From Klebsormidium nitens (Eukaryota; Plantae; Klebsormidiophyceae), in contig DF237093.1 of the NCBI GenBank assembly GCA_000708835.1, positions 34,973-98,972 on the forward strand: a stretch of 64,000 nt of DNA, in the 5' to 3' direction. Shown in pieces: positions 8,817 through 35,056 of the stretch. Below the pieces are notes generated by a model, which saw only the letters and a program-made list of their open reading frames with translations, searched no databases and had not been told where the DNA came from. The translations under genes were made by a program, and so were the position numbers. Within the stretch, counting starts at the first letter, position 1. Each line of letters begins with the position of its first letter.

Positions 8817-11318
8817 ATGGTGCAGCTGGGGAAGTGTTTACGAGTCAAAGGAGTTGGCAAGTGAGTTTCTATTTTCTTCGCTCGTGATGAGATCCTCCAT
8901 TCTGCATGTTACAGAGCAGCTTGCAACCAATCCATTGAGATGCTTTGAGAGCATGGTAGGTGTTTACTGAAGGCCTTGTTGGAAAGGACTGCAGATCTGC
9001 ATCACTAACGAGGTTGGCATATTTGCCACGGTTTGTGCTAAGAGGATTGTGTCATTGATTTGGGTAGCCTCTCACAAACTTTGGGGGCAAGGCAACTCCT
9101 TCCATCAGTTCTGTGATCTATGGCTTGTTTAACAAGGACACTGACAATATACAAATGTTTTCATGATGCAGCGGCGTAACCAGTATTGATGGCTGTCAGG
9201 TAAGCGATTAGCAGCGGGTATGGCTCTTATTTTTACTCTTCAAAGCTAATGCACAGGCAGCATTGGGTATCGTCAGCTTTCTAAGTGAAACTGGTCAGAG
9301 TGTTCCCCAAGTTCTACATTCAGTCCGCTTATGGTCAAAGCACCTTGAGCCAGGTTCTCGAACAGAGCACTTTGAATGGGCTCTTCTAACGTAGGTCTGG
9401 TTCTTTTTACAGACATGCTCAGGAACTGGGGCCCATCTGTTTCTCGTGTCCGCAGGCGTTCTCCCCCAGGCCCAAGAAACCCGAAAAGTGTGCGGCCTGC
9501 GGCTGCCATGCCTCCTTTCACCAACGCCTCGACGGGTCAGGCGCATACACTAGTGCAGATGCAGGGGCCGGTGTGCCTGGACCGGTAGCTGCCAGCAGCC
9601 AACCCCCTGAGTTGGCCATACTTCCAAAGCGAGGGCAGGTCTCCGCAAGGGGAGTCGCTCGCGGTGGCGCACGGAAACAAAGGAGCGCTCGGGTGCCGAA
9701 GACAGGGGGCGTGAGAGCAGAGAAGGCAGGGGCGGAAGTGGAGAAAGCAGGCGGGGGGGATGCGGAGAAGCCTGCAGCTGCGAACCGACCAAAGCGGGGA
9801 CCTGGGTCGAGGGGGGGTAAGGTAGTGGTTCGAGGTGCCGGAAGAGGCCGGAAGTCTAAACAGCTCGTGAAGGCGGATGGAGGAGCTTCCGGAGGGAAGT
9901 CCGCCGAAAGCGTCGTTGTTGAAGAGTTTCGGAGAGGGTCTAAGATTGGCGAACAACTGCTCCGGAAGGTAACTTCTGTTAAGGGGCCCGCTTCGAAGAA
10001 GATGGAAGGAGATGCGTACATGGGCCCTGGATCCAGGATGTTGACGATTTCCCGGAAGGCTGCACGGCTGGGGCTGACGGTGGACCACGTGGCCCCCAAG
10101 GTCGGGAAGGGCGAGGTCGACGAGTTCACAATAACCGAAGCGGCGGCAAAGCTGGGGATGAATCTCGATGTCAGGATCCCGGGCGAAGAGAATGCGACGT
10201 CGCTGCAGAGAGCCAGGACGATCGCCGCAAAAGCAAAGGGGCTTGGGTTGGTTTTGCCGGAGAAACCGACTGAGGAAGGCGGAGTCGGGACTGCTGTGCC
10301 TGGGTTCGCAAAGGCAAGTGCGGCTATGTCTGGAAGTATCGTGGTCGGGACGGGCATTGTAGATCTGACAGCTGAGGGGGAGGCGCAGGGGGCAGGGACG
10401 AAGAGGAGAGCGGCTGAGGAGATTGCAGGGGATGAGAAGAAGGCTCGGCCAAACTTTGGGGGGCGAGTAGAGGCTTGGATGAAGGCTGCGTTGCAGAAGT
10501 CGTGGGAGCAGGAGGGGGGTAGTGCACAGCAGAGCGGGGAGGAGGGGGAAGCGGGGTCTTCTGCGGACTCGATGGATGCCCTAGGTCAGGAAGGCATGGG
10601 GCGTGGAGATGCGGACTTGGGGGTGGGGCTAAGCGGCCTGGTAGTCGGGCAGGTGGGGGTACGAACTGCGGGCAAGGCGGGTGCGGCCGTGACGGAACCC
10701 AAGAAGTTTGGGGACGGAATCCTCTTTGCGCGCAAGACCCTGGCCGACCTTCTAAGCGAGAAGGCATGGCTGGAGAAGGACTTGGCGTTCCAGGAAGTGG
10801 ACTTTCAAAACAAGCACCTGTTCTTCCTGCGCTCGAAGCTGACTGCCAAAGGCGTCATTGACATGTACGACGCGCGGTTGTCGACCAGGATAGTGGTGGC
10901 GTATCTGGGCGGGCATGAAAAGGATCTGGCGGCAGTCAAGCAGCCGGTGGGCACGGTGCGTGTTGTTACGCAGAGGCCTTTCCCTTGCGAAAAGAAGCCT
11001 CTTGTGGCCGAGTGGATTGAGAGCAAAAACGGGTCCAACGTCGCGGAGGTTAGTCATCTGCTTGCACTTCAAGAGTATCGAAACGGGTCAGTGTCAGTCC
11101 CGTTGTTGGCTTACGCATACATGCGCATATTGAAACCGGCAGATGTCAAGTACGTTGTCATAGTGACCCAGCAAAAGTTGGTGGAGCGGTATCTCATGAA
11201 GCACTTCCTGTTTCTAGGCTTTGAGTTCATCGAGCAGACAGGGAACGGAGAGTGTGTGCTGGCACTAGATCTGGAGAAGGCGGTGGGGTTGCTGTATGGG
11301 CCATGGAGGTTTACCTGA
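8817..11318 (+). CDS. ZF-HD-type zinc finger / GNAT-like acyltransferase fusion, copy 1; exons 8817-8860, 9172-9199, 9456-11318 (644 aa)
   Basis: All junctions are GT-AG and phase-consistent. Spliced N-terminus MVQLGKCLRVKGVGNGVTSIDGCQAFSPRPKKPEKCAACGCHASFHQR matches the ZF-HD finger pattern (YRECLKNHA...DGCGEFMP...CAACGCHRNFHR). C-terminal block DMYDAR...VGTVRVV...FPCE...AEVSHL...EYRNG...FLGFEFI is GNAT/LuxI-FeeM-like. Confidence 0.85.
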
Positions 11319-11766: not shown

Positions 11767-12504
11767 ACTCTCGTGATCATGCCATACTGCAAGGCCTCTG
11801 GCTACTATTGGTCTTCTCTGTGCAACTCGAGACACATGCATCATTGCAACCATCCTACAAACAATGCAAGTTTGTTGTGTCATACACTACAAGTCATCTA
11901 AAAGTGCACAACTCTGTAACCATTAAGTTCGGACCGTAGAGCTGTCTTTGGGCGCGGTCAGCCGCCTTGTGCAAGATGGGGCTGCCTGCACTCATGGCTG
12001 ACAATTAATTGCACCACACATGATATGCATCATTAAGTCACATGGTATAAGAGCCCGCATGGCATGCATTGCAATCTTACATACCCAATTGGCCTCCATA
12101 AGCGAGCCAACTATACTCATGTCACCCATGAGCTGGGTCATGCCAGGTATGCATCATCCCAAATTGCAGGCCTCCGCCATCGCGGCCATGCAAATCCTCA
12201 ACATGTAGACCGCAAACCTTGAGCACGTACTGCGCAGTATCTTGCAATGATACTGCATTATGAAACGCTTGAAACACATGGAGCGGTTGCAGCTCAACAT
12301 AGAAAGCATGCTGGGCCATGTGCGAAGCAAACAAGCTGATAAGCAACACGAGCAGACAAATTGGAAGGTTATCCATGAGGGAACACAACGAACGCCATGC
12401 AAGAACATGCTGGTTGGCTGTGTGTCGAGCTGAAGCAAACAACTTTACAATACGACATCAACACAAGCTGACTTCATGTGGAAAAGCTGTAATCTCCAGC
12501 GAGT

Positions 12505-14306
<1,802 letters not shown>

Positions 14307-15006
14307 GGCTTCCCAGCCACTGGCTACGAATCTGACCGCCTGCTTAGGACTTTGTCCCTCCTCGAAGGCGGCCGCTCTACAGCCTGCCGCGGCAAAGAAA
14401 GAGGGCAAATCAAGGAGCTTCCAAGCCTTTTCAAGCAGCCCCGAGCTCCAGTCAAGCAGCTAGTGTGAATTGGTACCAATATTTTGATCGAGGGTTGGAA
14501 CTTGAAATAAGTTTCTCGAAGTTTAACAGCGGGCATCATCGACGGATCAGAATTGCGCAGCCTCCCACATGAAGCAAGTCAGTACCACCGGGTCCCACCC
14601 AGTCCACCTGGATTGCGCAGACTGCTCGCTACCGTATCTAGGATAGGTCCTAGAGCTCTATGAGTCTATCCTTGTCTAGGGAGTCAGGGAAGACTGCAGT
14701 CTGTAGACGGGACGTGGTGTGGGCGGCCAGGACGGCTTCAGCTCCTCGGAGTCCAAGCAAGGACGCCCTGTATCAAGACGTTCAAAACTGCATCCTTATC
14801 CTGCGTCTGCACAGCTCTAGGATTGTCATTGTTCCAGGCATATAAAGCAAGCTCGAAAGTACCTACGTTGCTGAAGGGAGGTGCTGAAGGCAGGTGCTGT
14901 TTCTGTTGACGTTCCTTACAAGTACGGCCTTCTCCACCTTCTGAACAACAGGTGTTCAAGCAGTTCCTTTGTGTGCGTTGAAGTTCCTAGGTAAACTACC
15001 TGTAGG

Positions 15007-15016
15007 TTTAGGGTTT
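15007..15016 (+). promoter_or_regulatory. Telo-box in the RPS27A/SCE1 divergent intergenic region
   Basis: TTTAGGGTTT ~40 nt before the SCE1 ATG. A second AAACCCTAG lies at 13921 in RPS27A intron 2. Telo-boxes are common at plant translation-machinery genes. Confidence 0.45.
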
Positions 15017-15057
15017 TCCAAGCAGGTTCCTAGCAGTACTTTCACCTTGGATGTAAG

Positions 15058-18000
15058 ATGTCGGGCATCGCGCGGGGGCGATTAGCCGAGGAGAGGAAAG
15101 TCTGGAGAAAGAATCACCCTCATGTGAGTGCCCCAAGATTCAAACCAGGCCGCGGTAATCAAGCTCACTTCTGTTGCATTGCTCACTTACTTTGAGTATC
15201 TGTTGCAGTGTTTCAGCAGATTGTTGTTGGAAGCTGCGGTTTTATCAAGCCGGCAAACAGAGGCTTGCAATATTTACCCTCAGTTTTGTGCTTCATTGGC
15301 TCCTCGCTAGCACCAGGGACCTGAAGGAAGAAGTGGTCCTATGCTTTTCTGGACATGGCCTGCACACTGCTGTTTGTATTCAAGTGGGGCTCTGTTTGGA
15401 GAGGATTTGTGTTTGATGAAGCTTGCTGCAATTCAGTTTGGTTGTCTTGTCGGGTTTTCTATTCATTGTCTCTCCATGAGGTGCTGCTCTATAGTTGCCA
15501 GAAATAGGTGCTGTCATGTCAGCCGCGAAGCTGCGGTTCGAAGATTGACATGTGGGACTGCACTTCCCACAGATAAAGTTGATACTTTACAAGCCCGCCT
15601 TGAACAGTTCAGCTTGTGCTGGAAGCAGACTTCAAGGTCTTTCTTTCACTTCGACGGAATCCAAGTGCATGTTTCTGGACATGCCTTTCTTATGTTTTGT
15701 AGCCCCTTTCTGTTTCCCATTGACATAGGGAGATTAGTGGTTGTATCTGGTAAAATCAGGTTGAGTGGATCTGAAAGAATCTAAGTAGACTTAATTGTGA
15801 CGCTATGCTATCATAGCCTATAGCCCCTTCCTAATACCTGTCAAACCTCAAACTTTGGATTACATGGCTACTTGTCGGGAATCTGAACATTGAAAACTCA
15901 CTTATTTGCTCTTGCAGGGTTTTGTTGCCCGACCAGAGACCACCTCCGATGGGACGTTGAACCTTATGACGTGGCACTGCAGCATACCGGGCAAGAAGGA
16001 TGTGAGCTGCGGGAAGCCCCTTCCTTGATGCTGTTCCACCAACTGCATCTGTTTCTTTGGCACTCCGACCCAGTCCTTGCTAAGAGTCCAAGTGATCATA
16101 AGCCTGGTATATGTCTTTGTTAACTCAGGACATACAAGGCATATGCTACCACTTCCTCATGGTGGTGTTACGCTCTGCAGACGGACTGGGATGGGGGTTT
16201 CTATCCCCTCACGATGCTGTTCAGCGAGGACTATCCGAGCAAGCCGCCGAAGTGCAAGTTCCCAGTAGGCTTCTTCCATGTAAGCTGCGAAAATTTTACT
16301 CTGTCCCTCTGGCTCACTTTGTGTCACGGTTTCTTCTTATCACATCATTCAATGGTACTGACCGTAACTCAATGTGTACTCCATGCCTCGTTTCCGTCGG
16401 CTGAGTTGCGGATGCTTCTCATGGCGTTGGCGTAGTGCAATTGAGTCATCTTGAGGCGGTGGTGCTTTGATCTGAGTACTCATTCCCACCTGTAATGGCC
16501 GTGTGCTTTCTCAATTTCGATATGCTCAGTCAACATGTCCATTTCCAAATGTCCAGTCCCGTAATTGATCTATCTGGCCCTACCTATTCGAGTCGATTTG
16601 TTTGTTGAAGTTATGATGAGTTCGGGCCTAAGGTCTGCATTCAGATATTCCGCTATGAAAGGAGTGTTGTTGAGCGGTATCTTGAAGGCCGCTCCAGATG
16701 TCTCCCGACATCAGGCATCTAAAAGTGGTCGACGTAGGTCTGGACGAATGCAATTTCGGACTGGCAAGAGATTTATGGGGTTTTGGAAGGCCTTTTCGAT
16801 TCTTAGACGTAGAAGACTGCACAGTGTGGCAGACTGCGGATTGGGACCTAGCCGTCAGAGCTCCAAATCTTGATTGGTGCGGGAAAGCGGCATCGCGGCT
16901 TGCAGCGATAATCCTGTCACTCGAGTACCAAACTCCGCAGACTGCGAAACTAGAAGTCTACTGGGTCCGGAATCCAACAAGGCCTTCCGAGATGATGTAG
17001 ATTTCTCGCCTGTTCGAAAATAGATTTGTCCAAAATAAGTTCGATAACCATTACCTGATGACACTTGAAGAGACGGCATTACGGGGTAGCCCAGTTTTTT
17101 AACTTCCAACCTGAGCTTGACTCGGTCAGCTCTGTCAGCAAGCAATTAGTTTGCGAGGACCTTTGTGAACCTGTCCGATTTGGAAGCTGTTTGGGATCTG
17201 CAAGCATTGCAAGTCGGTATCGTGTCGCTGTTCGTTTCTCGTCTCATGCCATCTTTAATTAAGTTGTCATTCAAACGGAAAAGTAGCATTGAGCTCTTCC
17301 ATGTCATTCTGCAGCCGAACATCTACCCATCCGGTACCGTTTGCCTGAGCATCCTGAACGAGGATACGGTGAGCTCTCTGAGTTTGTAAGAAATCCTTCT
17401 ATCCGGCCGAAAACTGGGTAAAATGTTGGCGCGTTTCAAGGAGTCTGTTCAACGCTTCTTTTAATTCTTTCAAAATCGACGGTTACGTTGAGTACCGCAG
17501 CATTCATTCTTACGACGACTGTTGGCTCATGACAGCCCGGATCGAAGCGTGATCGAGAATTTGCTCGTCAAATGCCTTCTACTATTGCAGCTTGTCAGGT
17601 CCTCGGTCAAAAGTCGAACGTAATGACCCATAGGTGTGTACCTTTGATGGCCTCTAGAGCGCTTGCAGAAGAAGGCGAGGATTGCAATCGGATCCTTCAT
17701 ATGGTCGTCGAGAGGGCGTTTGATTCTCATCTCTTCTAGTCTTAGGACATGCTTTCTTCTCACTCACAGGGCTGGAAGCCGTCCATCACAGTCAAGCAAA
17801 TCCTGACCGGCATCCAAGAACTTCTTGATGCCCCCAACCCTTCGGATCCCGCACAGACGGATGCGTATCAGCTATTTGTACAGGTGAGACACTCTTTTTG
17901 TGGGGCACCGAACGTGAATGTGTTGACAAACTGGGAACGGACCTGCCTCTTGATCTGCCCTGTTTTGATTTTCTGGTTAGTCAGGAAAAAGCACCCGGGA

Positions 18001-18151
18001 CGCTTGGTTTTATGGTGCTGTGTTGGGCAGTGATGGACGCTGTCCGCTTTTTATTCTTGCCAGCTCAACGATGTCCATTTTTCCGCAGGACCGGAAGGAG
18101 TATGACCGAAGGGTCCGTCAACAAGCGCTGAAATACCCCCCAGCAATCTGA
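15058..18151 (+). CDS. SCE1: SUMO-conjugating enzyme (Ubc9/SCE1); exons 15058-15123, 15918-16001, 16181-16279, 17315-17368, 17770-17883, 18089-18151
   Basis: [22 protein letters not shown]|GFVARPET...|[33 protein letters not shown]|[18 protein letters not shown]|[29 protein letters not shown]...|[20 protein letters not shown]. Catalytic Cys present. Confidence 0.97.
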
Positions 18152-19150
18152 TTGGTCATGTACATAAAATGGTTCTGATCATTATATCGGGGGAGCAGCT
18201 GTAGGGTTCACTTTAGCACCGCTGCTATGCAGGGAAACAGTAAGCATGCATCTTGCATAGCGAAGGTATGGTTAGGGGAAGGACTCTCTTGGTCTGCGTC
18301 CACCATAACCAACTTCATGAATTGAAGGACGTAGCTGCCAAGAAGCGTTCTGAGTTTCTATATGCCTAAACCTAGTCACTACTTTTGAACTTGTCAAGCG
18401 GTTGCATGCCAGACACAAAAGATATTGAAGCCTGCATGCGAAACCCATGTGACGGCCGGGTTGTGATTGAGCAGCCGCCCATGTGCATGGCCTAACTTAT
18501 CATGCAATGGACGACAGGCCGGTGCGCGTTACATTGGAAACATGTATGCGGAGATCTGGACCGTCATTGTGGGCATTGGAGTTGCAGCATCGGCCCCTGA
18601 TGAAATGAAATTGAAATAATACATGGGCTGTCCAGCCTATCAAATGTACTTCAGAACCTCAGATGACTTAAATATCGAATGAGAATTGCCGGCCTCTATA
18701 TACAAGTTCGTCCCATATGCGACGTGGACCTGGCAGCTAGGGGGCCGCCGATTTCGTGTGCACGGCGCCTGCGCCCCCGCGAAGTGATGAAATATGATGT
18801 ATGCGAAAGAGTAGCTGTTATAGGCTACCGCGTTGAATTGTTCGTTTTGCTGGCTTAAAAACGCCCATGCACGGTAAGAAATGATCACTTAGGCTGTCTC
18901 AGAGGACCACGTTTGAGTGGGAAAACTATTGTGATTCAGGAGCTGATCATCCAATCATAAATCTACACCGCCACGAATCGTCCCGCCTGGTTGCGGACAA
19001 CAAGAATAAACACGATAAAAACAACACGACTCCACATGCAGACGAAGAATGCTCTCAAAATACCTTTGCATATTCACTTTATGGTCACATACAAGGTACG
19101 TTCATATTCTGGCTTGAGGTGTCCAATCACGTTGGTTCACTTACGGCCAT

Positions 19151-20658
19151 CTACGACCGGAGTCCCTCTTTCTCGTCCGCTGGCAGTTGCACACTCCAGC
19201 TCGGTATCTCCTCCTTGGACGCTCTTATCAACGCGCCCCACAAGCGTGCTATGTCTGCATCATTGTCGCATCTCTCCCGTTTTTCGGGTTGTCTCTCAAA
19301 GACTGCCGCTTCCATGTCATTCAAACCTGTCTGCATCAAACAAAGTATTCCTGAGCATTCCGAAGTCTAGTCTTGAGGTTCACTGAAACCTCAAAAAGCC
19401 TCATTCAAAGTAGCTGTCCAAGTTTGAAAGCCTCCGGCGTCATTTGTTCAGGTAATTCACCTCGAAGTAAACCTATCGTTTTGAATTAAGCTTCAGCCCT
19501 TGGACGACCTGCAAAAGCTGGTTTTAGCTTTTTGACATGAACTCCGGGTGGATCAGAATATATTGTAGCTAGAGGTCGATTGTCATCATAAGTGGAGGTC
19601 AGCTGGTTGCGCTACTTTCCATGAGCATTCCAGAGCTCCTAAAAAGACGTTGAGGGTTCACTTTAATGAGCCAATCTGTTCTGAGGCTCGCTTGATCCGG
19701 GGGACCGTCCCTGAGATCCACGTGAGCTTTCGAAGCTGAGGCCGAGTGCATAATGCCACCAGAGCCTGAAGAAGCTCACCTTCGACTCGAGGTTTAGATG
19801 CACACACTGTTTTCCCAAGGTCTCCTCCTTGCAGAGATCCGCCATGACTGCGCGATACCCAGGGAGCAGCTCGAGCTCGATGGCGTCATTCCACTCAAAG
19901 AGTTGAACAGAGCCGTTGGCTATAACGAGAAACAACCTCCTTCTGTGCACATCTATCAGCAGGACATTTTCTACTCCTGCCTTGTAGTACCCCATAGCCC
20001 GCCACACGACTCCGCCTATCGGCCCACGGCTCAAAGTGACGGTATTTTTGTTCTGAAAAGTCAAGACGTCAAACCTCTCATTGAAGGCACCCGTCTCTAT
20101 GATTGCCTTCGGGATCAAAGTAAGAGGCTGCGTCTCTGATTCAAACTTCGCATCCTGGAAGTCTCTTCGTTCTGCAATCCACACCTCTGGAAGTTGCAGA
20201 GCATCCTGCTTGTCCAAACTCAGTCTTGTTCCGCCTGCGAATGTGACGAGGTCAGCCGCTGACGAATCTATAAAAGCGTCAATGCTGCATACGAGCTTAG
20301 TCAGTGCGTGGCCTTGCTGTGGGGAATGGCCCCAAAGGCTTACAACGACAGGTTGATGCCCTCCTCCGGTGAACGCTACCTGTTGATATTGTTCGGTCAT
20401 TCCTTTCAGAAGCTCAAATGTAAATCCCCTGGGATCAAAGAAGACCTTTTCTCCAACCACAATAGGGGGTCTTCGTCCAGAATTTCCGGTTTCAAGTATG
20501 ACAACAGGCTGAATCAACTCTGGATGAAACAGGTAGATTGCCATCTGCACGCTGGTTGGCTTCTTGCAGATCAGAGGTCTACCTATTGCCAGTCCTTGCA
20601 TCATTGATCCGGGACCCCCAAAATCTGGAATTTCGTCCACTTCTTGGAAGGAGAGCAA
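19151..20658 (-). CDS. Uma2/DUF820-family (PD-(D/E)XK) nuclease-like protein; large exon ~20658-19780 plus probable terminal exon 19330-19151; start uncertain
   Basis: Pattern GHSPQQGHALTKL...TRLSL...LPEVWIA...IPKAIIET...YYKAGVENVLLIDVHRRRL...ELLPGYRAVMADL follows the Uma2 layout (H...PD...PxxxxEV...YxxxGVxxxWLIDP...LLPGF). Donor ESK|gtgagc and a phase-0 acceptor precede TGLNDMEAA...LRS*. Confidence 0.7.
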
Positions 20659-21114
20659 GGGCTGATTCCTGCCCCGGCCGCAGCGCCAGGGTTTGTGAGA
20701 CCATTTTTATCGGCTGCACGGGACAGAAGTATGCAGCTTTCAAGTATCAGAATAAAGAGAACAGTAAGCTTATGTTCGTCAACTTGAAGACGCGGTGACG
20801 CGGCCGCCGCGTTCCAGGCGGGCCGCGGCCGCGGGCAGCTTCCCAGCATGCAGCAGACCCGGGTTTGCGTGGTTTGCGGGCTTCCAGGGAAGGGTTAGCA
20901 CGAAACGGAGGGTGGTCAGGCTTGACTGGATTGTGCTCGCGATCAGAGTCTCACGTTGGAGCTGCTCTGGCGCAGACCTGCGATGATGAAACTTTGAAGT
21001 GGCGCTCTTGAAATTGATGGAGGGACTTGGTCCCTAACCATCAGGCGCGGTATGGTATTGAGAAGAGTTGCAGTGGCGTTTTTGTAGAATTATCTTCATT
21101 CTCCAGGGACTAAG

Positions 21115-24100
21115 ATGTTGGGGTTTCACAAGAGCATTGTGGAGGAGGTTGCGCAACAGGATGGGTTGGTGGTCATGGCAGCCGGCCTGGGCATGCATAA
21201 GGTGCGTGGCAGCTCCTCTCGTTGTACTGCAGTATGCTGCTTAAGCCCCGATTCTGGTTCGGATTGTTCTTTCTGGGGTTGATGCAAGCGAAGTTCTGAG
21301 TCAGGTGTCAAGAGTGCAACTAAGTAACTTTCTCAGAAAGTCCACCACTGATTGTGAGGGTTTTCCTGGCATTGATTGAGGATGTTAACTTTCCCCAGGA
21401 ATGATCAGCGTGTTTCCTGAGCTCAATTACGGTTTGCAAAGTCAAAACCGTGCCCTTAGTCTCTGGAACCCATTTTAAACTGTCCTGGTGTTGTTGGTGG
21501 ACAGGTCATTGCAGCCATCCTGACAGCGCACATCAGAAACCCCGAGAACAGGGAGAAGGTGGTGCTGCTCCTAAGCGTAAACCCCGAGCAGCGGCAGGTG
21601 CTACAAGAGGAATTGCGGTTACAGCATGAGCTTACAATAAAAAACCCTCCCCCGGACCCTCCCCAAACTTCTGAACAGCCAGCCACTCAAGCCCCTGACT
21701 CCACTCCAAACCCTGAGCCTTTCCAGGGGGTGACACCACAGCCTGGAGAAGCTTCCCAGTCTGGCTCCCCCTTGCTAGCAGGCCCCGCTACAAGTACCCC
21801 CCCTGCCACCACAGCTTCAAGTACCCCCCCACTTGGAAGCTTGGCTCTTTCTGTCCCTCCTCAGACTGCCCCCCTGCTCCGGGAAGTAGACAATCAATTT
21901 TCCAGCCATGAGCGGCTGGCACTGTATCGGGGGGGCGGGTGTCTGTTTGTCACGAGCAGGATTCTGATTGTTGACCTGTTGAACGAAAGGGTGCCCCTGG
22001 GCCAGGTGTCAGGCATAGTGGTCTGTAACGCACACAGGGTCACGGAGACATGTGCGGAGGCGTTCATCATGCGGCTCTTCCGAGCGGGCAACAAGAGAGG
22101 GTGAGTTAGGAAAGGGTGTTGATCCTGTAATGTTTGTTGCAACGAGCTGCCTGATTGTCTGCTTGTCTTCAACGTGCTCGCAGAACCTGCTTTGAAGCAT
22201 CTGTACTTGCGGTAAGTGGTTCTGCAATTCCAGACTCTGTTTAAAGTTTCCTTGTGTCCATGCGTTAATTCTGACGTCTGCAGACACCGAAATTTTACGG
22301 TTGGACCTCGTTTTAAATGCTGGCGCGTATTGTCATTCCCTCCTCCAGATTTAGGCAGCCCGGCTGACCTCATGTTTCATCAGACATGCTGAACTGTCAT
22401 TGAACCGTGTGCCAAGTCAGTTCTTAGGGCATCAAATGATTTCCCTCGACCTGTGCCTCCTCTCCCTGCAGTTTCATCCGTGCGTTTACGGACCGGCCCC
22501 AGGCGGTGGCGTCCGGTTTCAACAAGGTGGAGCGCATCATGAAGAGCCTGTTTCTGAAGCGGCTCTACCTCTGGCCGCGCTTCCAGATGCAAGTCAGCTC
22601 TGCGCTGGAGGCCAGCCCCCCCGAAGTGGTGGACATCAGGATGCCGCTCTCGCCCGCCATGGTGGCGATTCAAGAGGCAATCATCCAGGTAGGCTTGTTT
22701 TCTCATTTCCAGACCTGTTGAAACATAGAAGCTTTTCAACATTCTTAGATGTTTCGAAACATTGATCATGGTCATGAACTTTCCACTTTCAGTTTCCCAA
22801 AATGGTTGAGGCCCCGCTGCGTAGAGTTCTGCCTTGTTGTGCTGTGGGACTGCCGCCAACAAAGGCGAGCCACCCACGTTCGAGTGAGCTTCCCTTAATT
22901 CTTGACGTCAATCTCAGTTTCGGGTGGGCGTTCCTAACTTTTGAGTCTTCGAGATACTTGCTTTTAACCGCCTTCGTGAGACAAAATGAGACAAAGAAGA
23001 CCACCTCTTCACCCTGCTCGTGCTCGCTTTCACAGCCCACACCTCAGCACAGGATCTATCACATACGAGATCCTGTAATCACATACGAGATCTACAAGAA
23101 GACGTGGACATCGAAGTTGCTTACAAAAACAGCAGAAAACAGTCGACGTCCTTCACACTCTCTACCATGATCTACTCAAGTCGCTTTTCGCCCCCCTCAG
23201 GTAATGGACGCGTGCATGAAGGAGCTGAAGAAGATCAACAAGCTAGACGTGGAGGACCTGACGGTCGAGAATGGGCTGTTCAAGTCCTTCGACGAGATTG
23301 TCAGGCGGCAGCTCGACCCCATCTGGCACACCATTGGTCGGAAGGTGAGACGCTTTCGCCTCGTTCCCCGGCAATCCAGTACCGAAGCAGGGACCGTGCT
23401 TGTGCTGCGGACTCATGATTAAGGGGTCAGGAAGGAAGATAAAGCGTTTTAGAAAACGTTTTTCAGAAAACCCAATCCGAACATTCTAGCTAAGCCTACT
23501 TAACCTGCTGTCATTCGAGTACAGGAACTCACTTCCCGAGTTCATTCCAATCTAGGCCGTCACCGGCCCGTTGTTTCCAGCAACATCTCTTATTTTCACG
23601 ATTCTCGTCCCTTTATGGTGACCTTCTCTTCAGCAGTCAACCCTGTGTGTGTCAAGAGAAGGGGGAAGTGCTCGTTCTTTTAGTACACAAAGATGATTGA
23701 GTCCTTCACTTCCTCAGATGAGGAGATCTGGCAAAGATAAAAAGAACGGAAGGATGAATAACCATAAGACCTGGAATTGTAAGAGTTGGCGTGATTGTCT
23801 GGCGTTCCCCTGACCCTTGAGCCGTCCCTCCTCCAGACCAAGCAGCTGGTAGCCGACCTGAAGACGCTGCGCAAGCTGGCGGAGTTTCTCCTGCGCTACG
23901 ACGCCGTCACGTTCCTGCGCTATCTCGACACGCTGCGCCTTTCCGAGGGCATCCGCTCCGTCTGGCTCTTCGCCGAGCCCACGCACAAGATCTTCGAGTA
24001 CGCCAAGCGCCGCGTGTATCATGCCGTCAAAACAGGGCCCGACGGTTTGGCTGTCCAGCCCGCCCAAAAGAGAGGCCCTGTTGCGGCCAGTGTCGCTAAG

Positions 24101-27100
24101 AAGCGGAAGGGGCCGGGAGGGCAGCCGGCGGCTGTACAGGGCCTGGGGAATGCGAACGGGGCGGCTGCAGGGGCCGCTGCTGAAGGGGTTCCAACAAAGG
24201 TGGAGCTGGAGGTAGTCCTGGAGGAGATGCCCAAATGGAGGATTCTGCGAGTGAGGATCGGTGTTAGGGTTTTCGTTTACTCTGCACGGATGTCTCTCCT
24301 TCATGCACTCGTGGAAGTTAAGTGTCACTAGGCACTCACTTACCATATCTTCTCCTTTAGATTCTCCGTTTCGTTGCAGTTGAGACCAGACCCATTTGCT
24401 TTGAGGCAGAGCCTACGGACGATAATGCATGTTTGGATTCCTGCAACTCTTCCGTTTCAGGGGGTTTTCTACATCTCAAAGCGGTGGCCAAAACGTTTCG
24501 TCTGTAATGGTCGCTGCAGCTGCTCACGGCAAGTGGACCCTTCCTTGCTGCAGGAGATATTGGAAGAGATTCAAGAAGAGAAAGAAGAGCTCGCAAAACA
24601 GCGAGCCCTTGCCGCAGTCGCGGCCATGGAAACCCAGGAACGGACCGCCCAGTCACCCGCCCCGGACCCTCTAGAGGTGGGCCCCAGCTCCCGCGACCCG
24701 GCGGGACGTCTAGCCGATTCCGACTTCGCCACCAGCGGAGGCTTTGTCAGAACCACCCCCCCATTTGTGAACGAGGACGACGGACCGGTGCTAGTAGCGG
24801 CGAAAGACGAGCGCATGTGTCTGCAACTAGAGGCGTGCATCGTTCATGGGGGGGGGGCGGTGATGCGCGCGGAGTGGGACCGGTTCCTGCTGGCCAAGGC
24901 GGAAGTGCACAAGGCGCGGCAAAAGGGGAAGAAGAAGGCCGGGGGGGTGGAGCAGCAGGCGGCAAACGGGCAGCCAGGTGACTCATCCTTTCGTACTCCG
25001 TACTTTGTTTTAGCTTAAACTTTCAAGAAGGCTACGCTTGAGTACCGATGTCTAGAGAATACTGTGAGTTGGTGTATGGAGGACATGCGGGGCGTTCGAT
25101 GAGGATGCAGTCGGAGAAAGAACGTCCTACTTGCTTCTTCAGTGCAGCGAAGCTACTCCAACGAGAACATCGTTCTTCTCCCTGGGCTAGCCGTGCTTAT
25201 CCGCGGCATCCCTAGGTTTGTGAAGCCGGACTGTAGTATGTCTGTCGCAATTGTCGGGAGCGTGCGTGTTCGATTCAACAACTTCGAACCTCCAAGCTCG
25301 AAAGCTCGAACCCTCAAAACTCCGGATATCTCGCTTCTCTCGGGCAGACACTTGATGCGTTACTTTCAATCATTCCTTTACAGGCCCGTCAAATGCTGCT
25401 GCTAAAGCGCCCGCCGGCGCCTCCGGCACAGGCGAGCAAGAGGCTCTCCTTGCAGCGGCAAAGAAAGTCTTTTCCAGAGGGGGGTCTGACGCGCTGACCA
25501 TACCGGAATCAGGGTTTGAAGAGGAGAGGGGTTCAAAGGCCTGGGGCCGAGGGAGGGGGAAAGGAAAGGCGGGGAACAAAAGCGGGTCCGAAGGCAGCGG
25601 GGGGGACTCGGAAAGCGGAGGGAAGGAGGGGGGGCGCGGGAGGGGTCGGGTGAAAGGGAACCGGGGGAGGGGGAGAGGCGCCGCAGGCGAGAAAGGGCAA
25701 CGGACGCTTACTCAGATTGGGCGCAAGGAGTCGGGGGGACAAGGGGAAGCAGTTCTCGACGAGAGGGGGAAAGAAAAGGCAGGCGAAGAGACTGGGGGCG
25801 ATGAAGACGTCGTTGAAGTGGATGGCAGCACCTTCCGAGCCCGTCAGGGGACAGGGTCTGGACGGGTTAACTCTGTGGTTAGCGAAACCGCCTTGGATTC
25901 GACCGGGGGGACTGCGAAGAATGGAGACCAAGGGGATGGCGAACCGGACCGGAAAGGGAAGCGGAAAGCGGAGCCGGAAGTGGCGCCATCGCTGAGGAAG
26001 GGTGCGAAAAGGCGACGGAAAGCGCTGCCGGCGGTGCACTTCTACGCGCTGGAAAGCGAACAGCAGGTGCTCGAGGTGGTAAGGGCTGAGATTGTTGACA
26101 CGATCTATTCACCACCCTACTTCGACTTTTCTTGATTCCGTTGCCTAAGGGATCGATGACAGTTGGTTTAATGAATACTGCCATCAGATGCCTTCTCCGC
26201 CCCACTCTGACAAATGAGAGCCAAGGCGGCCGGCGCATCTTGCTTCCTGTTCCTTGTTTCTGGCGACCATGTCTAGCGATGGGAGAATCCTCATAGGCTC
26301 CCGAGACAAGTCGTTATAAAGTTGGCTGCAGAGACTTCTAGAAGGAAAGAGAACCGCCAGCTCCAAAGCCAGCCGTTGCGTGAGCCCCCCACTTCCCAAC
26401 TTTCTGAAAATCACATCCAAGCAGCAGCATACGTTACAGGAAACTTCATTGCTCACCCCCGACAGGCGCGGCCTTGTTACGTCATCTTGCATGACCATGA
26501 CATGCCTTTTGTGCGCAAGCTGGATTTGTACCCATCATAAAGCCTCAGAGTAACTCACTTTGGCAGTCTTATAATTCCTAGATCAGACTCTCCTTTCTGC
26601 CTCGCAGGTGCGGCCCGCTTAGGTCATCGTGCATGACTCTGACATAGCGTTTTGTGCCCTTTACCATCATAAGTTCTCAAGGTAACTCACCTTGGCAGTC
26701 TTACAATTTCTAGATTGGACTCGTCGACTCCCCCACAGGTGCGGCCCGCTTACATCATCGTGCATAACATTGACATGGCGTTTTGAGCACTGTACCTTCA
26801 TAAACCCTCAGCGAAACAGCTTGGCAGTCTTACAAATCTTATATCGGACTCGTCGAATTCCCCGCAGGTGCCGCCTGCTTACGTCATCGTGCACGACCTT
26901 GCCATGGGTTTTTGTGCACTGTACCATCATAAATCCTCAAAGTAAAGTTAGGGGGTGAGGGGTTCGGGCTTAAGGTTCGTATAGAGCCCTTGCATGGGTT
27001 AGCTTGGCAGTCTTACACTTCCTGAATCGGACTCATCAATCTGCCCGTAGGTGCGGCCCGCTTATGTCATTGTGCACGACCCCGACATGGCGTTTGTGCG

Positions 27101-30100
27101 CGAGCTGGAGCTGTACAAGGCGGAGCACCCGGAGCGGTCGCTCAAGGTGTACTTTCTGCTGTACGAGCAGTCGACGGAGGAGCGCAAGTTTGAAAGCTCC
27201 ATCCAGCGCGAGAACGCCGCATTCGAGGCGCTGATCAAGCAGAAGGCCATTATGACCGTGCCAGTGGACCAGGTGCAACATGTTGTCTGTATGAGAATCT
27301 TTTGTTCTTTACCAGAGTAGGTGACTTAAGTCCAGGTATGATATGTTGTTTGTATGAGATTCTTTTGTACTTTAGCAGGGGAGGTGGCTGACTCGCTTCT
27401 CACATCCACGCATCTCGTTGAGCAGCTTCTTGCCTCTGGCACGCTGTTCCTTTTCTGGTCGACCATCCGGCCAGACGATTGGAGGACGGATGCAGGGTTT
27501 GGGATCGGAGAAACCGAAATTGTGGGAGGGATCACACTGCTCCGGGCCGCGCTTCTGGGCGTCGAAGCACTCCGCCCCACCTGCGTTTACCCTCTTCTCC
27601 AATTTTGGATCAACTTACAAGAAAGATCCCGCCTGTAACAGCATTGCATTCCGCTTGGAACATATCCGATTTCTTGCAACAGCATCAGTTTCTGCTAGCA
27701 CCAACATCCGCTTCGACATTGTAACAACGGCAGTACAAACGTCAGATACCGCTTGTAACAGCATCCGGTTCCGCTTCTTACAGGACGGTCGACTTGCCGG
27801 GACGGCTGCCCCCCAGAGTGCGACGGGGGTCACGTTCTCGACGTCAGGCCCAGGCGGCACGGGCATCTCGACGCGCAAAGCGGGGGGACGGCAAAAGGAC
27901 CGCGCGATGCAGGCGAGTCTTGATTCTCCGTTGAGTCAGGCTCACGTCGACTTGTATCAGATCCCCTGGCCCAAAGAAGCCCAAAGGTGAAGTCTCAAGT
28001 CAACATGCGCTACACCCTTGCCAACCGTAAACCAACCCTACCCTTTTTCTGGGCAGTATCCAACTCAACGTAGCCCTGGTTTGTGAACGACGTAGTAAAC
28101 GCAGATATAAAAAAAATGCTTAGACAGATTTTCGTAAGTAACGTAAAGTCCAACACTTGTGTGATGCAGGTGGTGGTCGACATGCGCGAGTTCAACAGCA
28201 GCCTGCCATCCGTGCTGCACCAGCAGGGCATGAAGATCGTGCCCGTCACGCTCGAGGTAAGAACCTAGGCCGCGGATCCTACTCAAACCGCAGTCCGCAT
28301 CAGTGCGGACGGTGCATTTATGCGCGAAATGAGTTCTAATGTGGTCCTGAGTTATTTCGCTTGGTGCTGTTCAGAGCAGAAGGCTCGTTGTGTTGCCTAC
28401 CAATTGCGAGCAAAAGGCTCGTTTCGGTTTTTGAGAAAAAATTTGGCGATAATGTGTCTAGTATGAAAGACGGCGGAGAGAGCCTGGCAGGCTTCTGTGA
28501 GGCGTACCTGACAGCACATCTCGTGACAGGTTGCTTAAGGTCCGTCTTGATGATGGTGTTATTCGGCTTTCTGTCATCCGCTCTTGGTGGCGACACAGTT
28601 TGTCCCGGAAGGCGACAGAGTTTGTCCTGGAAGTGTGCGTGGAGCGCAAAAGCGGAGGCATTTGAGTTGACACCAGGTCTTCCAGCAGTCCGCTTTGAGT
28701 GCGCACTTTTTATGATGGTGTCACTAATTTCGAAATTTGTCCTCGTGTTGGCTAGGTGGGCGACTACATTCTGTCCCCCGAGGTGTGTGTGGAGCGCAAG
28801 AGTCTGGCGGACCTGTTCCAGTCGTTCGGCTCCGGTCGGCTGTACAACCAGGCGGAGGCCATGACGCGCTACTACAAGACGCCCGTGCTGCTTATCGAGT
28901 TTGACCAGGACAAGAGCTTCTCGCTCCAGGTGCGCGCGCTTTTCTTTGCGTACGTTTACACATCGAGGATGTTGAACGAGCCTACAAGAGAACATGTGTC
29001 ACTGATGCTTGACGACAAAAGACCGGAAGTCTCCCGGCGGGTGCTGAGACTCTCGTGAGGACCATGCCGGTTCATAGAAACTGAGCTTTTGAAAGTCAGC
29101 CGCTTCCGCACGTGGCAGATTGGGCCTCTAAACCAGTTACGCCACGTCTCCACGAGCGTTCTTGGAGTCGAGCGTTCTCTGAAGCGGCTCCTTTTTGTTT
29201 GCCTACCCACGTTCCATCAAATGTCCAACGTTCGGAGGCCGATGCTCTGCTATTTTTGAGTCCCTTTGTGTAACTCTCCAGAGCTAAGTCAACGACTTGG
29301 GCAGTGCATATATGCTCAAAAAAGGCATGAAACTGCCATTGACGCCTCCAGCCCTCGGCATTGTTCTGCTCATAACATGCACCCGACGTGTCTGATACGG
29401 GAAATGTTCGACTGGGTATCCCTTGGTGCTGCAATTGCTCACCTGAAGACTCAACGTCTGATCGCGAATAGTCAACTTTGGAATGCTGCGTAAGTGACAC
29501 GTGGCTTGTCCTTGTGCAGTCTGCGGGCGAGCTGACGGACGACATCTTCGGCACCAACATCATCTCCAAGCTGTCGCTCCTGGTCCTTCACTTTCCGCGG
29601 CTGCGCATCATCTGGTCGCGCAGGTACGCCTTGCCTAGTTTCCGCTTCTCCAGTCCCTTGTTCCATGTTGTCAATTCGAGATTTCGCGCTCTCCCGTGAC
29701 ATTCTGTCCCGTTTTTTGCTTTTTGAAGTGCTGCTTCTTTGCTCTCGTCCTGCGCTGTCTGGACCCTTCTCTGCTTGCGTTGCCCCTTGATCTGGAGGGT
29801 GTTTCAATGTTTCCAAAAAGCCGGGCTTTCAGAATTGTAGGGCTGAGGCTTATTTACCCAAATGTTCTTTTTTCTCGTTGTGACCAAATCCAAATGACCA
29901 TCCGAGGCTGCAAAGTCTGCTTCGTCTGCCTCGTATGCGACTTCATGCCTGCTCGTCCCTACATTCTGGGTCTGCGCTCACTTCAGCTGGGATCGAGGAT
30001 CCAGCACTTGCACGTCCGGAAGCGCGCAAACTCTTCCTCAACGCGTCTTCCAAAGCAATCTATCCCGTCCTTTCTTCCATCTGCAGCGTGCATGCCACGG

Positions 30101-31784
30101 CGGACATCTTCGCCGCCCTGAAGGCCAATCAGGAGGAGCCAGACGTCAAGAAGGCGATGGTGGTCGGCGTGCCCACCGAGGATGGCGTCATCGAGGGGGA
30201 CAGGCAGGGGGAGACGTACAACACCACGGCGCAGGAGGTGAGGCGCTCGAGAGAGTTTGCTGTAAACCAAGACGTTGGGTTAGGCTTGGGTTTTGACAAA
30301 CGACTGAACGACACAGGATTCGTGGGGCTTGTAATGCTAGCACCCGGCACAAGAGGTGAGACGGCCACAAATGTCTGCGGTAAACAAAGGCCTTGGGTTA
30401 AGTTTGGGGTTTGACGGTCGACTGAAAGGACACAGGATTAGTGGGGCTTGCGAAGGAAGACGCACACCGCTCAAGATGCGAGGCGCTCAAACCGGTTGAC
30501 GGCCAAGAGTTGTGGCCCAATCCAACGCAAAAGGCAACTCTTTAGGGTTACCCAGGGTATGGGTATTCTTTTTGTGTTAGTCAACTTTGGATGCACGCAA
30601 AGGGAGAGTCTCAGTTCACAGCTTAGGAGGGGAGGCGCCAGAAAGCATGCCAAGCTCTGGGCTTCAGGGTTCTTGAGTGTCGGCGTTTGAATTGAGGTCT
30701 GGATTCCCGCATTCTGAGCGCATGCCGGGAAGGACGTACAACCCCGTAGCAAGAAGTTCTACCGATTTGCCCAGCCACACGGTCGGTTACTTTGACTTCC
30801 TTCATGAAACTGCGGTTAACAGGGGACCGAAGTGCAGATAAGTGCCTTCGAGATCTTTCAAGCCACTGGTGGGAAAGTGGTTAGAGAACCAACGTCCGGC
30901 ACGTGAAGATTGACAATGACAAGGACGGCTTTTGAGAACTCTTCTGAAAGGGATTCCTGACATTACGGCTGACGTCTAGTTCCAAGAGTCCCTTTATAGG
31001 AGCAACTGAAGAGCTTCCCTCTCACAACTTCACGGAGTTTTGCCCAGGGCTGATCGGAGTACACCTTCCAGCACCAACACAGTTCCTTGAGGCTTCTGAC
31101 TGCCTTGAGTGCCTTGATTGATTTTGAGGCTTCTGACTGTTCTGTCCGTCGACGCCTTTCAATACTTTCCGCGGATTCCAATCTTGCAGGTATTGCGCCG
31201 TCTCCCTGGTGTGACGGACGCCAATTACCGCATGCTGATGGACGGAGTTAAGTGCCTGGCGGATCTCGCGGTGAGTATTGCAGAGCGCGTCGGGAGAAAG
31301 TTTACAAACGGCGACCGGCTACCCGAAACTTCACGTTTGCAGTCGCTTGGAAGAGCCAGGTAGTTCCAAAAACGAGCGACATCCGGTCATTATCTGTTAT
31401 CTGCATGTCGCCGCAAGGCACATGGGGCAGACGCCTTCTTAAGCGACGTTCCCTGGTCGCTCCTGTTCGCTTCCTCTCTCCAGCAGACTAGCTGCTTCTT
31501 GAACTGAAGAGATTGCAAGCCTGCGCCTCAGTAGTTTTTGGTTCGATGAGCCAGCTCACTTGGCAGATGGGAGATTTGTTCGTGTCGTTGTATCCCTTGA
31601 CGACCTTTCTGAAGCGTGATGCACTTCTGAAAGCATATCTTTACGGCTTTCTTATTTTGGACCGACGTCAAGGGCATTGAATCTGCAGGAGACGTCCATA
31701 GAGGACTTGAGCAAGTTGATGGACGGGCAGCGCCCTGCCAAGATGCTGCGCGAGTTTCTAGACGCGAAGTGCCCAACCGTGTAG
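21115..31784 (+). CDS. UVH1: DNA repair endonuclease XPF (ERCC4/RAD1/UVH1 orthologue), many exons
   Basis: MLGFHKSIVEEVAQQDGLVVMAAGLG; FVTSRILIVDLL; FQKLYLWPRF-type exon (SLFLKRLYLWPRFQ); YDAVTFLRYLDTLR; VVVDMREFNSSLPSVLH; VGDYILSPEVCVERKSLADLFQSFGSGRLYNQ (intact GDY..ERK nuclease motif); HhH region LRRLPGVTDANY; ends FLDAKCPTV*. Confidence 0.95.
26461..27110 (+). repeat. Tandem array of four degenerate copies of an XPF intron-end/exon-start unit preceding the functional exon
   Basis: (C/T)AG|G(T/C)GC(G/C)GCC(C/T)GCTTA..TCATCGTGCA(T/C)(G/A)AC units start at 26466, 26608, 26739 and 26868; the true exon starts at 27051. Each unit is followed by ...TTGGCAGTCTTA...GGACTC. Confidence 0.9.
30262..30450 (+). 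repeat. Intronic ~70-bp direct repeat (2 copies, 118 nt apart) in XPF
   Basis: GTAAAC...TTGGGTTA.G.TTGGG.TTTGAC...CGACTGAA.GACACAGGATT.GTGGGGCTTG at 30262 and 30380. Confidence 0.8.
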
Positions 31785-32433
31785 ATACGACCGTAAACTT
31801 CCAGGCATCAGAGATCAGGGCCCGCACCAACCGTCTCTATATGTGTGGACACACGATCAGGACCTGCAACTTGTGGTCTACCATGTATCAAACCCTATGG
31901 TGGAAGGGCAACGGCCGCATGTAGTTTACCTAGCGTCTTGACAAGCATTGCTTCTTCAAACTGAGATGGTCATGCACGTTTGCAGTTCCTTCAAGATCTA
32001 GCACGACAAGCATGCATGCCACGAAACTCGGCTTGCTAGCTAACTCAAGTTCATGGTTGTGATGCAGAGTCGGATGCGGTATGTGCATATCAACATGCAT
32101 ATGCACACTGACAGCATTGTATGTGATCAAAATGATGGTCTCTTTTTGAATACGCCGTAGCCAATTATAGGCCACAGGCTTCTAGCTCATGGCATACATG
32201 ATCAAGGTTGTCCGACCACAATCGTTTTCGTGCATGATGTACGTTTCATATATATGCATTCAATCGGTGTGGCTAATCTGTCGGATTGTAATTCAGAACC
32301 AAAGGACAGTCTCCGACAAGCAGGTTACCGTCATTGCACGGCCTCCAATTGCAATCCACCCTTTTGTTTGAAAGAAGCATCTGGGTCGATTGAGTGGGCT
32401 GTCAGGATCGAACTGTGATGCAGAGTCCGGACG

Positions 32434-34764
32434 TCATATAAGCAGGTTTCTATGTGCTTTCTCTAGGTTTACAGCGAGCACCGACCCTGTAGTACCAAAG
32501 TTTTCGATGAACTCAAAGCCCAGAAACGACAAGTGTTTGAAGAAATATCTCTCAACTTGCGTCTGGGTCACTGACAACAAAACACAATTTACACCCGCCG
32601 GCTTCAGAATCTTTAAGTAGATATAAGCGAACAAAGGGATCGTCACAGCCCCGTTCCGGTATTGAGGGAACGTATACAAGTAGCTGAGCTCCGCTACGTG
32701 CGTGCTGATGCTCCGCCCCTCGAGCCATTCTGTCACGGCTGGCCGCCGCTCACAGTCAAATGGCCGTTCCATGACCACGCGTATCGTCCCCAGCGGCTGC
32801 GAGAGTTCTACCCGCTCTTTCTCGTCCTTAGCCAGATACGCAATGACCTTCTTCGTTGACGACCTGGCATCCAGGGTATCCGAGACGGTTCTTTGATCGA
32901 GCTGCGATCGCAGGATCGTCAGGTGCTTATTCTCAGGGCCCACCTCTTTGAAAGCCAGGTCCTTCTCGCACGACTTCTTATTGCTCAAAAAGTCCGCCAG
33001 CATTTGTCGTGCAAAACCGATCCCGTCCCCAAACGCTGTATATTTACTCGCACTGCCAGTTCCCGCCTCTTCCCATCCGATTGTCCTCGTCTTCGACTCC
33101 TTCAGCCACTTCCCCTTTCTCGCACTGCCTGCTTGTTCTCCTTGCTGCATTGGCGCCCCTCTCACTTCAAACAACAGCAGCCCCGCACCTCTTCGCACCC
33201 CCCTAGGCTCGAACCCCGTTGTCCCCCGCCCCGACGGACTTTGGCCAGAGGTTCCTGGCGCGCTCTGCATCCAAGTGTGGCCAACGCGAGCCTTCTTCGC
33301 CGGCCCCGCCAGTTCTTCCCGTGTCCTCCTTTTCGCGCCGCTCCTAGTTGCCTCCCCCTCCGTCAGGTCCACCACACTGGCCCACTCGGAGCCTCTCCCC
33401 ACCACCGATGCTGCAAAGCCCCCCCGCCCGAACAAGGCGGAACCCCCCCCTCCGGCACCCATCACTTTGTCAGGCAACACCAGTCCCAGCTCTCCGGCCC
33501 TCTCCGCAATCGTCTTAACTTTCGGCACTCGCTTGCCCTTCTTCCCTCCGTCCTCATCATGACGACCGGCGCCCAGCTTCACTCCCCGTAGCGCGGCAAT
33601 CTGTGCAATTGTCAGCTCCTTGGGCTTCCCTTCGCCCGGATAGTTGGGCTCCACCGTGACGCCCAGCTGAGCGGCCGTCTCCGCGATCGTGAGATCGCCC
33701 TTTCTGCAGTACCTGCTTTTGCCGGCGGCCCCACCAGAAGTTGCCCCATCACTTGGGTCCAATCGGCCCGTACTCACGGCAGTAGCTGCGCCCCCCCATA
33801 CGGCGCCTGCCGTTTGCTCCGCACGGGTTTGCCTCTGACCAATACGCCCCCCCTTCCGACCTCTTTCCCCGCCGCTTTGATCTCCAACGGCCTGACTGCG
33901 TCTGGGAATGATTGGAACCTCGTCCACATTGACACCAACCAGAGGGATCCAGGGTGCAACGCCCCCAGGCACCACTCCAGTGTCAATGTCCAGTCGCTGG
34001 TGAAAGGAGGCATGGCATCCGCAGGCCTCGCACCTCTGGGGATTCTTGGGCTTAGGCGAGAACGCCTGTGAACAGCGGAGCCAAGGGGGAACTGCGTCAA
34101 CTGCTTGCAACTGACGATTGGACGTTAAATCCAGCATGGTTGAATTGAACCAGACAAGAGCCCCGCATCATGCAACAGCACATGGTGCTTCAGAGCAGCG
34201 ATTCCTAAGATGCTACTTGCCAAAAGCGCAAAGAAGAATGCAAGTCAGAAGCTAAGACTGAAACGCATTTGGAAGTGACCTGATAGCCCCATGCATTCGA
34301 TGATGTTTGGCACCAGAATAATGCAGCGTACCTGACACCCATCATAAACAGTGACGCCCCTGCAAGAGAAACAAGCTGTGAAGTCAAGACTTTGCTTACA
34401 GAAGTTGTCCAAACAGTTGTTGTGCACAAGCACTCTAGGAGCCCACCAAAGTTCAGCATCAAGGGCAAACTGCATCTTTAAAATATTGAAACAAGGCTGT
34501 ATGGTAAGCAGCAGCTTTCTTGAACCTACTCAACTAACAGCATCACATTGAACTCATTGGGCTGGTCCAGTGACGGCACACAGTGTTTGGTGCCATTGCC
34601 CTATCTGATTGCAGCAAGCAGAATAGCCAATCATCGTTCAGAATGGGCCTCTAGATAAACATTGAGAAACACACCAAAACGAGATAGCCAAAAAAAATGA
34701 TGCACGGATATTAGACTTACTTGCTGGCGCCTTTGTTGCGCAGACACTTCCCAAGCTGCGCCAT
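32434..34764 (-). CDS. ZF-HD-type zinc finger / GNAT-like acyltransferase fusion, copy 2; exons 34764-34721, 34359-34332, 34065-32434
   Basis: Spliced N-terminus MAQLGKCLRNKGASKGVTVYDGCQAFSPKPKNPQRCEACGCHASFHQR. Exon sizes (44 and 28 nt) and phases are identical to copy 1. C-terminal domain is collinear with copy 1 (FGDGI.FAR..LAD, EKDLAF.EV, GT.RVV..RPF.CE, YRNG, ILKPA, VERY..KH..FLGFEFIE, LEKA). Confidence 0.85.
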
Positions 34765-35056
34765 TTGTGCCAAAGCCTTGAGATCTCAACTGATCAGAGA
34801 CAACCAGGGACTTCCACCAGTCTTCTGCATGCAATGAGTGAATGCGAAGGACGAACCCACATAAAAGAGGAAACTAACGATCACACCAGGAAGTGCTGAT
34901 TGCAGTATGATAAAATGGTGGCCTGCTGTCGAGTTTGCCCTTCCAACTCAAACTCTAAGAGTTGAAGGTTAGGGTCTCTTGTCAGAGCTGCACTTTCAGG
35001 GCGCCATTTTGAATCTCCGAGCTGCTTAAAACAGACGAAGCAAAGTTGGCAAAAGC

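Follow-up and report, generated by a model that had tools for sequence, protein, structure and literature searches.

Inverted, separately selected copies of a ZF-HD-like finger/GNAT gene in Klebsormidium nitens

The window analysed here, a 64,000-nucleotide stretch of Klebsormidium nitens contig DF237093.1, holds two genes, copy A and copy B, which join an N-terminal ZF-HD-type finger to a C-terminal GNAT-fold domain. The second copy, B, is real, spliced and selected, and the architecture is maintained. Purifying selection acts on each copy separately. New here are the single-copy state of an outgroup and the inversion, against this outgroup, of the block between the two K. nitens copies. Our joint reading, which we hold with moderate confidence, is that a duplication with inversion left two genes that are both selected and that both act as acyltransferases on a nuclear acceptor. 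Public gene models exist for both copies, each domain is of a known kind, and the family is restricted to a single algal lineage.

Gene structure, transcripts and selection

Copy B (KFL_001440160) runs on the reverse strand from 34764 to 32434 and encodes 567 aa without an internal stop. Its first coding exon (34721..34764, 44 nt) supplies the first Cys of the finger, the second (34332..34359, 28 nt) carries the DGC part, and the third (32434..34065, 1632 nt) continues through the stop codon. The two GT-AG introns, of 361 and 266 nt and with phases 2 and 0, are removed exactly in contigs from three RNA-type sequencing runs of three studies, and the spliced junctions are absent from the DNA run. 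The RNA label of these runs is a guess; because the copy B introns are skipped in their contigs, the runs hold spliced transcripts. A 5′ untranslated region (34765..35032, reverse strand) is drawn as far as the RNA contigs reach. Copy A (KFL_001440110) lies on the forward strand at 8817-11318 and encodes 644 aa in coding exons at 8817..8860 (44 nt), 9172..9199 (28 nt) and 9456..11318, separated by GT-AG introns of 311 and 256 nt. The public gene models agree with both protein lengths.

A preliminary description of this DNA had reported the same 44-nt, 28-nt and long exons with the same phases on opposite strands, and the two genes indeed have this structure, 21.1 kb apart. A tblastn search of copy B against copy A gives an E value of 3e-100. 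The introns had been called dissimilar and are so (p 0.19 and 0.30 against shuffled sequences); the same statement about the linkers does not stand, as these are 32–36% identical where alignable. Identity between the copies amounts to 76% in the finger, 44% in the repeats, 59% in the SIM/NLS region and 54% in the GNAT domain. The domains are collinear as described, with an indel-free finger and a 1-aa indel in the GNAT domain. More than the one small indel of that description exists: indels of 1–3 aa fall between the repeats, and copy B lacks the 5-residue C-terminal tail of copy A.

Both genes occur, syntenic and with matching introns and neighbours, in a second Klebsormidium (Logan SRR23617307), so the duplication predates the split of the two species. 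Synonymous sites of A and B are nearly saturated (dS about 2), which makes the A-versus-B dN/dS of 0.18–0.26 unreliable; we therefore calculated dN/dS by the Nei-Gojobori method between the orthologues of the two species (dS 0.55–0.60 for the A and B pairs), with exons joined in local scripts for alignment. For copy B the ratio is 0.09 in the finger, 0.22 in the repeats, 0.10 in the GNAT domain and 0.23 overall, and for copy A it is 0.08, 0.18, 0.15 and 0.25, respectively. Linkers reach 0.28–0.52. Bootstrap intervals of pN/pS for the finger and GNAT domain top out at 0.23–0.29. By domain, dN/dS between orthologues thus comes to 0.08–0.15 in the finger and GNAT domain of each copy. Together with the high dS, the shared synteny and the splicing of copy B, these values confirm that the duplication is old and that both copies have been maintained. 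The open frame, splicing and dN/dS rule out copy B as a pseudogene.

Two other accounts of the similarity between the copies were considered and rejected: site patterns show no sign of gene conversion between A and B, and no further paralogous gene pair within the window points to a segmental duplication. Exon 1 measures 44 nt in both K. nitens copies and 41 nt in the second-species orthologues, the start lying one codon earlier in K. nitens. This parallel shift of the start codon (window 8817-8822 and 34759-34764; second-species contigs L001 5095-5100 and L002 9531-9536) also comes without a sign of conversion.

Copy B stands head-to-head with an MO25 gene, whose contig starts at 35177. About 145 nt separate the RNA contigs of the two genes (window 35032-35177), and they likely share a bidirectional promoter. 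Downstream of copy B, a 33-bp element at 32128-32166 is also present in the second species (L001 5-37) and recurs elsewhere in the genome, judged by loose ends in DNA contigs. An assembly gap directly follows copy A (11548-11767). We rejected a scaffold artefact at this gap, as an ungapped second-species contig reads glyoxalase, A, RPS27a.

Finger, linker motifs and candidate active site

The C-terminal half of the copy B finger (33994..34065, reverse strand) reads C-x2-C-x-C-H-x3-H and gives a partial PF04770 match at E 0.001, below the cut-off, in searches that took one exon, or a part of exon 3, at a time; PF04770 is precomputed on the record for both full-length proteins. The ZF-HD signature comprises five Cys and three His (PMC10415114). 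Seven of these eight residues are kept (C7, C23, C36, C39, C41, H42 and H46, that is, five Cys and two His), and the first signature His, in the N-H-A motif, is replaced by Lys in all four proteins. In common with ZF-HD/MIF proteins (PF04770; ZHD5, MIF1), A and B have an N-terminal Cys/His finger of the form C..DGC..C-x2-C-x-C-H-x3-H. They differ in the N-H-A position and in a finger spread over three exons, and they carry a GNAT domain instead of a homeodomain: a Pfam search gave no homeodomain match, and the C terminus folds as a GNAT. MIF proteins consist of a finger only, in about 100 aa, whereas A and B have 644 and 567 aa with a second domain.

Between the finger and the GNAT domain, copy B has three short helical repeats (33475..33693, reverse strand; aa 149-162, 175-188 and 208-221). 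These are single short helices with no compact fold in the structural model (pTM 0.29) and no match in the Atlas. A SIM-like motif, VVDLT (33361..33375, reverse strand), appears as IVDLT in copy A, is kept in both species and fits a described SIM class (PMC4086084). It is followed by a bipartite NLS-like basic motif (33286..33333, reverse strand; aa 269-284), which is retained in all three lineages.

The GNAT-fold domain occupies 32437..33033 (reverse strand; aa 369-567) in copy B and 10707-11315 in copy A. An AF2 model of the copy B domain has a moderate pLDDT of 69 and a pTM of 0.70. Its matches place it among GNAT folds, with 339 PDB matches at E<=0.001 and 175 chains at Z>=8, GNATs on top. 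The best Foldseek match is FeeM (2g0b, E 1.9e-6). VIA-align Z scores for FeeM (12.6, rmsd 2.9 over 158 residues), LasI (12.1), Naa60 (11.7) and TofI (11.6) are tied within about one unit. Atlas neighbours by features and shape are FeeM-type clusters, at TM 0.60–0.65. At the sequence level, the third exon of copy A scores 16.5 bits against PF21926 (FeeM), under the cut-off of 27 bits, and copy B has no PF21926 match; in all, three of five family members match (best E 0.0007). Matches to TIGR03694 likewise fall under the cut-off, and PDB sequence searches with the exons of the copies returned nothing real. The modelled C-terminal domain is thus a GNAT fold with a FeeM/LuxI lean rather than membership, because the Pfam and NCBIfam scores stay below cut-off.

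Five residues are invariant in all sequences found: D420, D423, R453, E483 and S485 in copy B, equivalent to D493, D496, R526, E555 and S557 in copy A. The active site of the LuxI-type synthase EsaI contains Asp45, Asp48, Arg68, Glu97, Ser99 and Arg100 (PMC5131480), and the catalytic Glu of FeeM is Glu95 (PMC4897644). By eye, from motif order and the position of Glu on strand 4, five of the EsaI residues have candidate counterparts; Arg100 is the exception, with His, Tyr or Ser in its place. The invariant Glu sits on a predicted strand of the copy B GNAT model (117-125). The LuxI-type enzymes LasI, TofI and EsaI resemble the family in fold (Z 11.6–12.1) and in the order and similar spacing of D-x-x-D, Arg and E-x-S. 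They differ at Arg100, and sequence alignment to a phage LuxI protein is not significant. FeeM synthases (PF21926; 2G0B) and PEP-CTERM acyltransferases (TIGR03694) provide the best fold match and appear to share the invariant strand-4 Glu, whereas A and B are eukaryotic and intron-containing, with a finger and a long linker fused to the enzyme and without a nearby carrier-protein gene. Naa60/Gcn5-type protein N-acetyltransferases share the fold and a strand-4 Glu before the CoA loop, and A and B carry an NLS-like motif. They show no match at the sequence level, and the CoA loop of A and B departs from theirs: an invariant YRNG follows strand 4, and the final G/A of R/Q-x-x-G-x-G/A is absent, one residue off consensus.

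Both copies are most likely active acyltransferases, a prediction made because the full set of candidate catalytic residues is kept in each. They would catalyse acyl transfer from a thioester donor to an amine, with the strand-4 Glu as general base. The acceptor would be nuclear, and probably a protein, because the NLS- and SIM-like motifs point there. An alternative is that A and B are small-molecule synthases of the FeeM/LuxI type, making N-acyl amino acids or acyl-homoserine lactones with differing specificity, and that the finger and motifs regulate or place the enzyme. FeeM, LasI and TofI among the top four fold matches, the FeeM hits in Pfam and in the Atlas, and the LuxI-like D-x-x-D and E-x-S motifs are consistent with such synthases, as is a non-canonical CoA loop of the kind found in carrier-protein-dependent GNATs (PMC11685415). 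We nevertheless consider them unlikely, as every Pfam score lies under the curated cut-off, identity is 8–13%, the FeeM Z score is tied with that of a protein acetyltransferase, no carrier-protein or biosynthetic gene adjoins either copy, and the NLS- and SIM-like motifs fit poorly.

The finger, for its part, most likely mediates protein-protein contact. Dimers of ZHD/MIF proteins require the ZF motifs, which also suffice on their own, and heterodimers arise readily (PMC3020774). Because these proteins dimerise through this motif, pairing of A and B through their fingers is at most a plausible guess by analogy. The preliminary description had gone further, to one active and one regulatory subunit, which the data do not support. 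Besides the ZHD/MIF precedent, an obligate A-B heterodimer with one catalytic and one regulatory member could draw on the seven metal ligands kept in both fingers at a dN/dS of 0.08–0.09 and on the longer stem branch of B (0.53 against 0.22 for A). This rate asymmetry is not significant, however (Tajima p 0.18), the candidate catalytic residues do not vary in either copy, and the GNAT domain of B is as constrained as that of A (0.10 against 0.15). The outgroup, moreover, manages with one copy, and the N-H-A His is missing from both fingers. Such an arrangement therefore appears very improbable, and an inactive subunit is unlikely.

The motif differences on which the idea of divergent functions had rested, DMYD versus DTLD and EVSH versus ELSY, are present in the sequence as claimed. 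The second, however, does not distinguish the paralogues: the B orthologue has EVSH, the A orthologue ELSH and the outgroup ELSS. The first is fixed (DKLD in the outgroup), and it differs only at two spacer positions between the invariant Asp residues. The substrates of A and B may still differ, because 54 A/B differences are fixed in about 200 GNAT residues and the stem of B is the longer. In our preferred reading, the copies would be partly redundant, or would differ in substrate or expression. A more speculative extension, which we regard as improbable, combines these elements into a lineage-specific, nuclear, SUMO-binding acyltransferase pair with a bacterial LuxI/FeeM-type active site, whose fingers form homo- and heterodimers and also bind fingers of ZHD/MIF-type or transposase proteins. 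If true, the finger would guide the enzyme into complexes of transcription factors, making the pair an enzymatic equivalent of the MIF microprotein system.

The inverted block and the origin of the pair

The outgroup is a distant relative, for which a contig of JGI 3300060284 was walked to 39.6 kb. Its order is an SDR gene, one finger/GNAT gene, RPS27a, the SUMO E2 gene, XPF and glyoxalase. The SDR gene corresponds to window 45.4 to 41 kb in reverse, the stretch from RPS27a to XPF to window 12.5 to 31.8 kb in forward orientation, and glyoxalase to window 4.3 to 3.85 kb in reverse. The flanks of the two loci are thus collinear, whereas the block of about 20 kb between A and B (RPS27a, SUMO E2-like and XPF/ERCC4 genes; 12400..31800) is inverted relative to them, with the copies, themselves inverted, at its ends. 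Because this block is inverted against a single-copy outgroup, the A/B pair marks two inversion breakpoints. The upstream side of the outgroup gene is that of B and its downstream side that of A. The five-residue tail is common to A and the outgroup, and its loss from B coincides with the new junction.

Staggered breaks are a described mechanism that leaves inverted duplications at the breakpoints of an inversion (Ranz et al. 2007, PMC1885836). The Klebsormidium locus resembles such duplications in that oppositely oriented copies bound a block inverted against a single-copy outgroup, and in that one copy keeps the old upstream side and the other the old downstream side. It differs in that both copies are selected here, in that MO25 and an XPF remnant blur the breakpoints, and in a polarity taken from one outgroup lineage. 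A duplication followed by recombination between the copies would yield the same arrangement. Two features show that more than one rearrangement occurred: the two-copy species alone have MO25 between B and the SDR gene, and copy A is preceded by an XPF remnant. This remnant is a decayed, inverted exon copy at 7863..7983 (reverse strand), 77% identical to 22502-22620. A longer one occupies the equivalent place in the second species (L002 8367-8982). In both species the remnants correspond to inverted 5′ exons of the XPF/ERCC4 gene (window 21.1–22.6 kb), and the promoter of copy A may derive from the duplicated XPF stretch.

We infer the direction of the rearrangement as follows. A single nuclear-type gene, with a ZF-HD-like finger, a low-complexity linker bearing an NLS-like motif and a C-terminal FeeM/LuxI-like GNAT domain, would have been duplicated in inverted orientation, together with the inversion of the 20-kb block, in the ancestor of K. 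nitens and the second Klebsormidium. Purifying selection would since have kept both copies. Judged by these sequences, a single-copy ancestry is probable. The opposite course is an ancestral two-copy state in which the outgroup inverted the block via the inverted copies and then lost one, or holds its second copy elsewhere. The duplication may predate the split from the outgroup lineage, because A, B and the outgroup form a nearly star-like tree in the GNAT domain (site patterns 22/14/18). The outgroup also shares the C-terminal tail and a GRVEAW motif with A (57% identity, against 51% with B). Divergence at four-fold sites is 0.55–0.69 for all pairs of A, B and the outgroup, and that between A and B (0.55–0.58) is not below the 0.49 seen at neighbouring genes in comparison with the outgroup. 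We nonetheless regard two-copy ancestry as a possibility of limited weight. It requires at least two events, no remnant copy is found in the 1.3 kb that separates XPF from glyoxalase in the outgroup and no second finger/GNAT copy within its 39.6 kb, and the profile search returned no B-like outgroup protein. The finger sequence, the three repeats and VDLT are, moreover, common to A and B and absent from the outgroup: in the finger A and B agree at 21/26 positions, as against 13/26 with the outgroup, and the linker scores 228 as against 82–110.

Outgroup exons 1 and 2 are not identifiable, with a best score below background. In the outgroup finger (L005 10070-10150), Arg replaces the first His of H-x3-H, and this finger may be degenerate by this sign. 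The SUMO E2 gene (SCE1/UBC9-like) inside the inverted block spans window 15055-18157. Its position beside SIM-bearing genes is probably chance, because this gene neighbourhood predates the SIM-like motif, which is missing from the outgroup protein. Degenerate tandem repeats with units of about 120–140 nt occupy XPF introns (26457-27101 and 30222-30450) and the end of the window (63100-64000).

Distribution and meaning of the family

Besides A and B, a profile search over 1.84 billion representatives turned up a single true relative, and two GNAT-bearing copies are thus known in K. nitens. The relative (P0005, P0007) belongs to the more distant alga (Logan SRR14092359, JGI 3300060284) and is 50–57% identical. 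Another profile match, P0006, was rejected as a tandem-repeat false match, and tblastn matches to plasmids are due to chance. A search with the finger only was insensitive, missing even copy B, and gives no count of finger paralogues. We found no paper that names either locus tag or the finger/GNAT architecture.

Restriction to one algal lineage, along with one Atlas cluster of FeeM-like proteins that is 55% viral, could suggest that A and B are domesticated genes of a mobile element or virus, with a finger that binds DNA or chromatin instead of dimerising. This origin seems improbable: there are only two copies, which bear introns and are stably syntenic and under purifying selection, no terminal repeats or transposase were found near them, scans of viral, metagenome and prokaryote contigs revealed no relative, and the viral fold matches are generic GNATs.

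The restricted distribution and a predicted function limit the general interest of the family. What had been an odd automatic gene model is, in the light of the selection data, a real two-gene family, conserved and spliced. The orthologues leave five invariant residues as targets for mutation and take EVSH/ELSY off the list of informative differences. The locus likely adds an algal example in which a whole gene was duplicated at the breakpoints of an inversion and neither copy was lost. In a streptophyte alga, the ZF-HD-type finger here appears as a movable module on an enzyme, which bears on the origin of the ZHD/MIF proteins of land plants.
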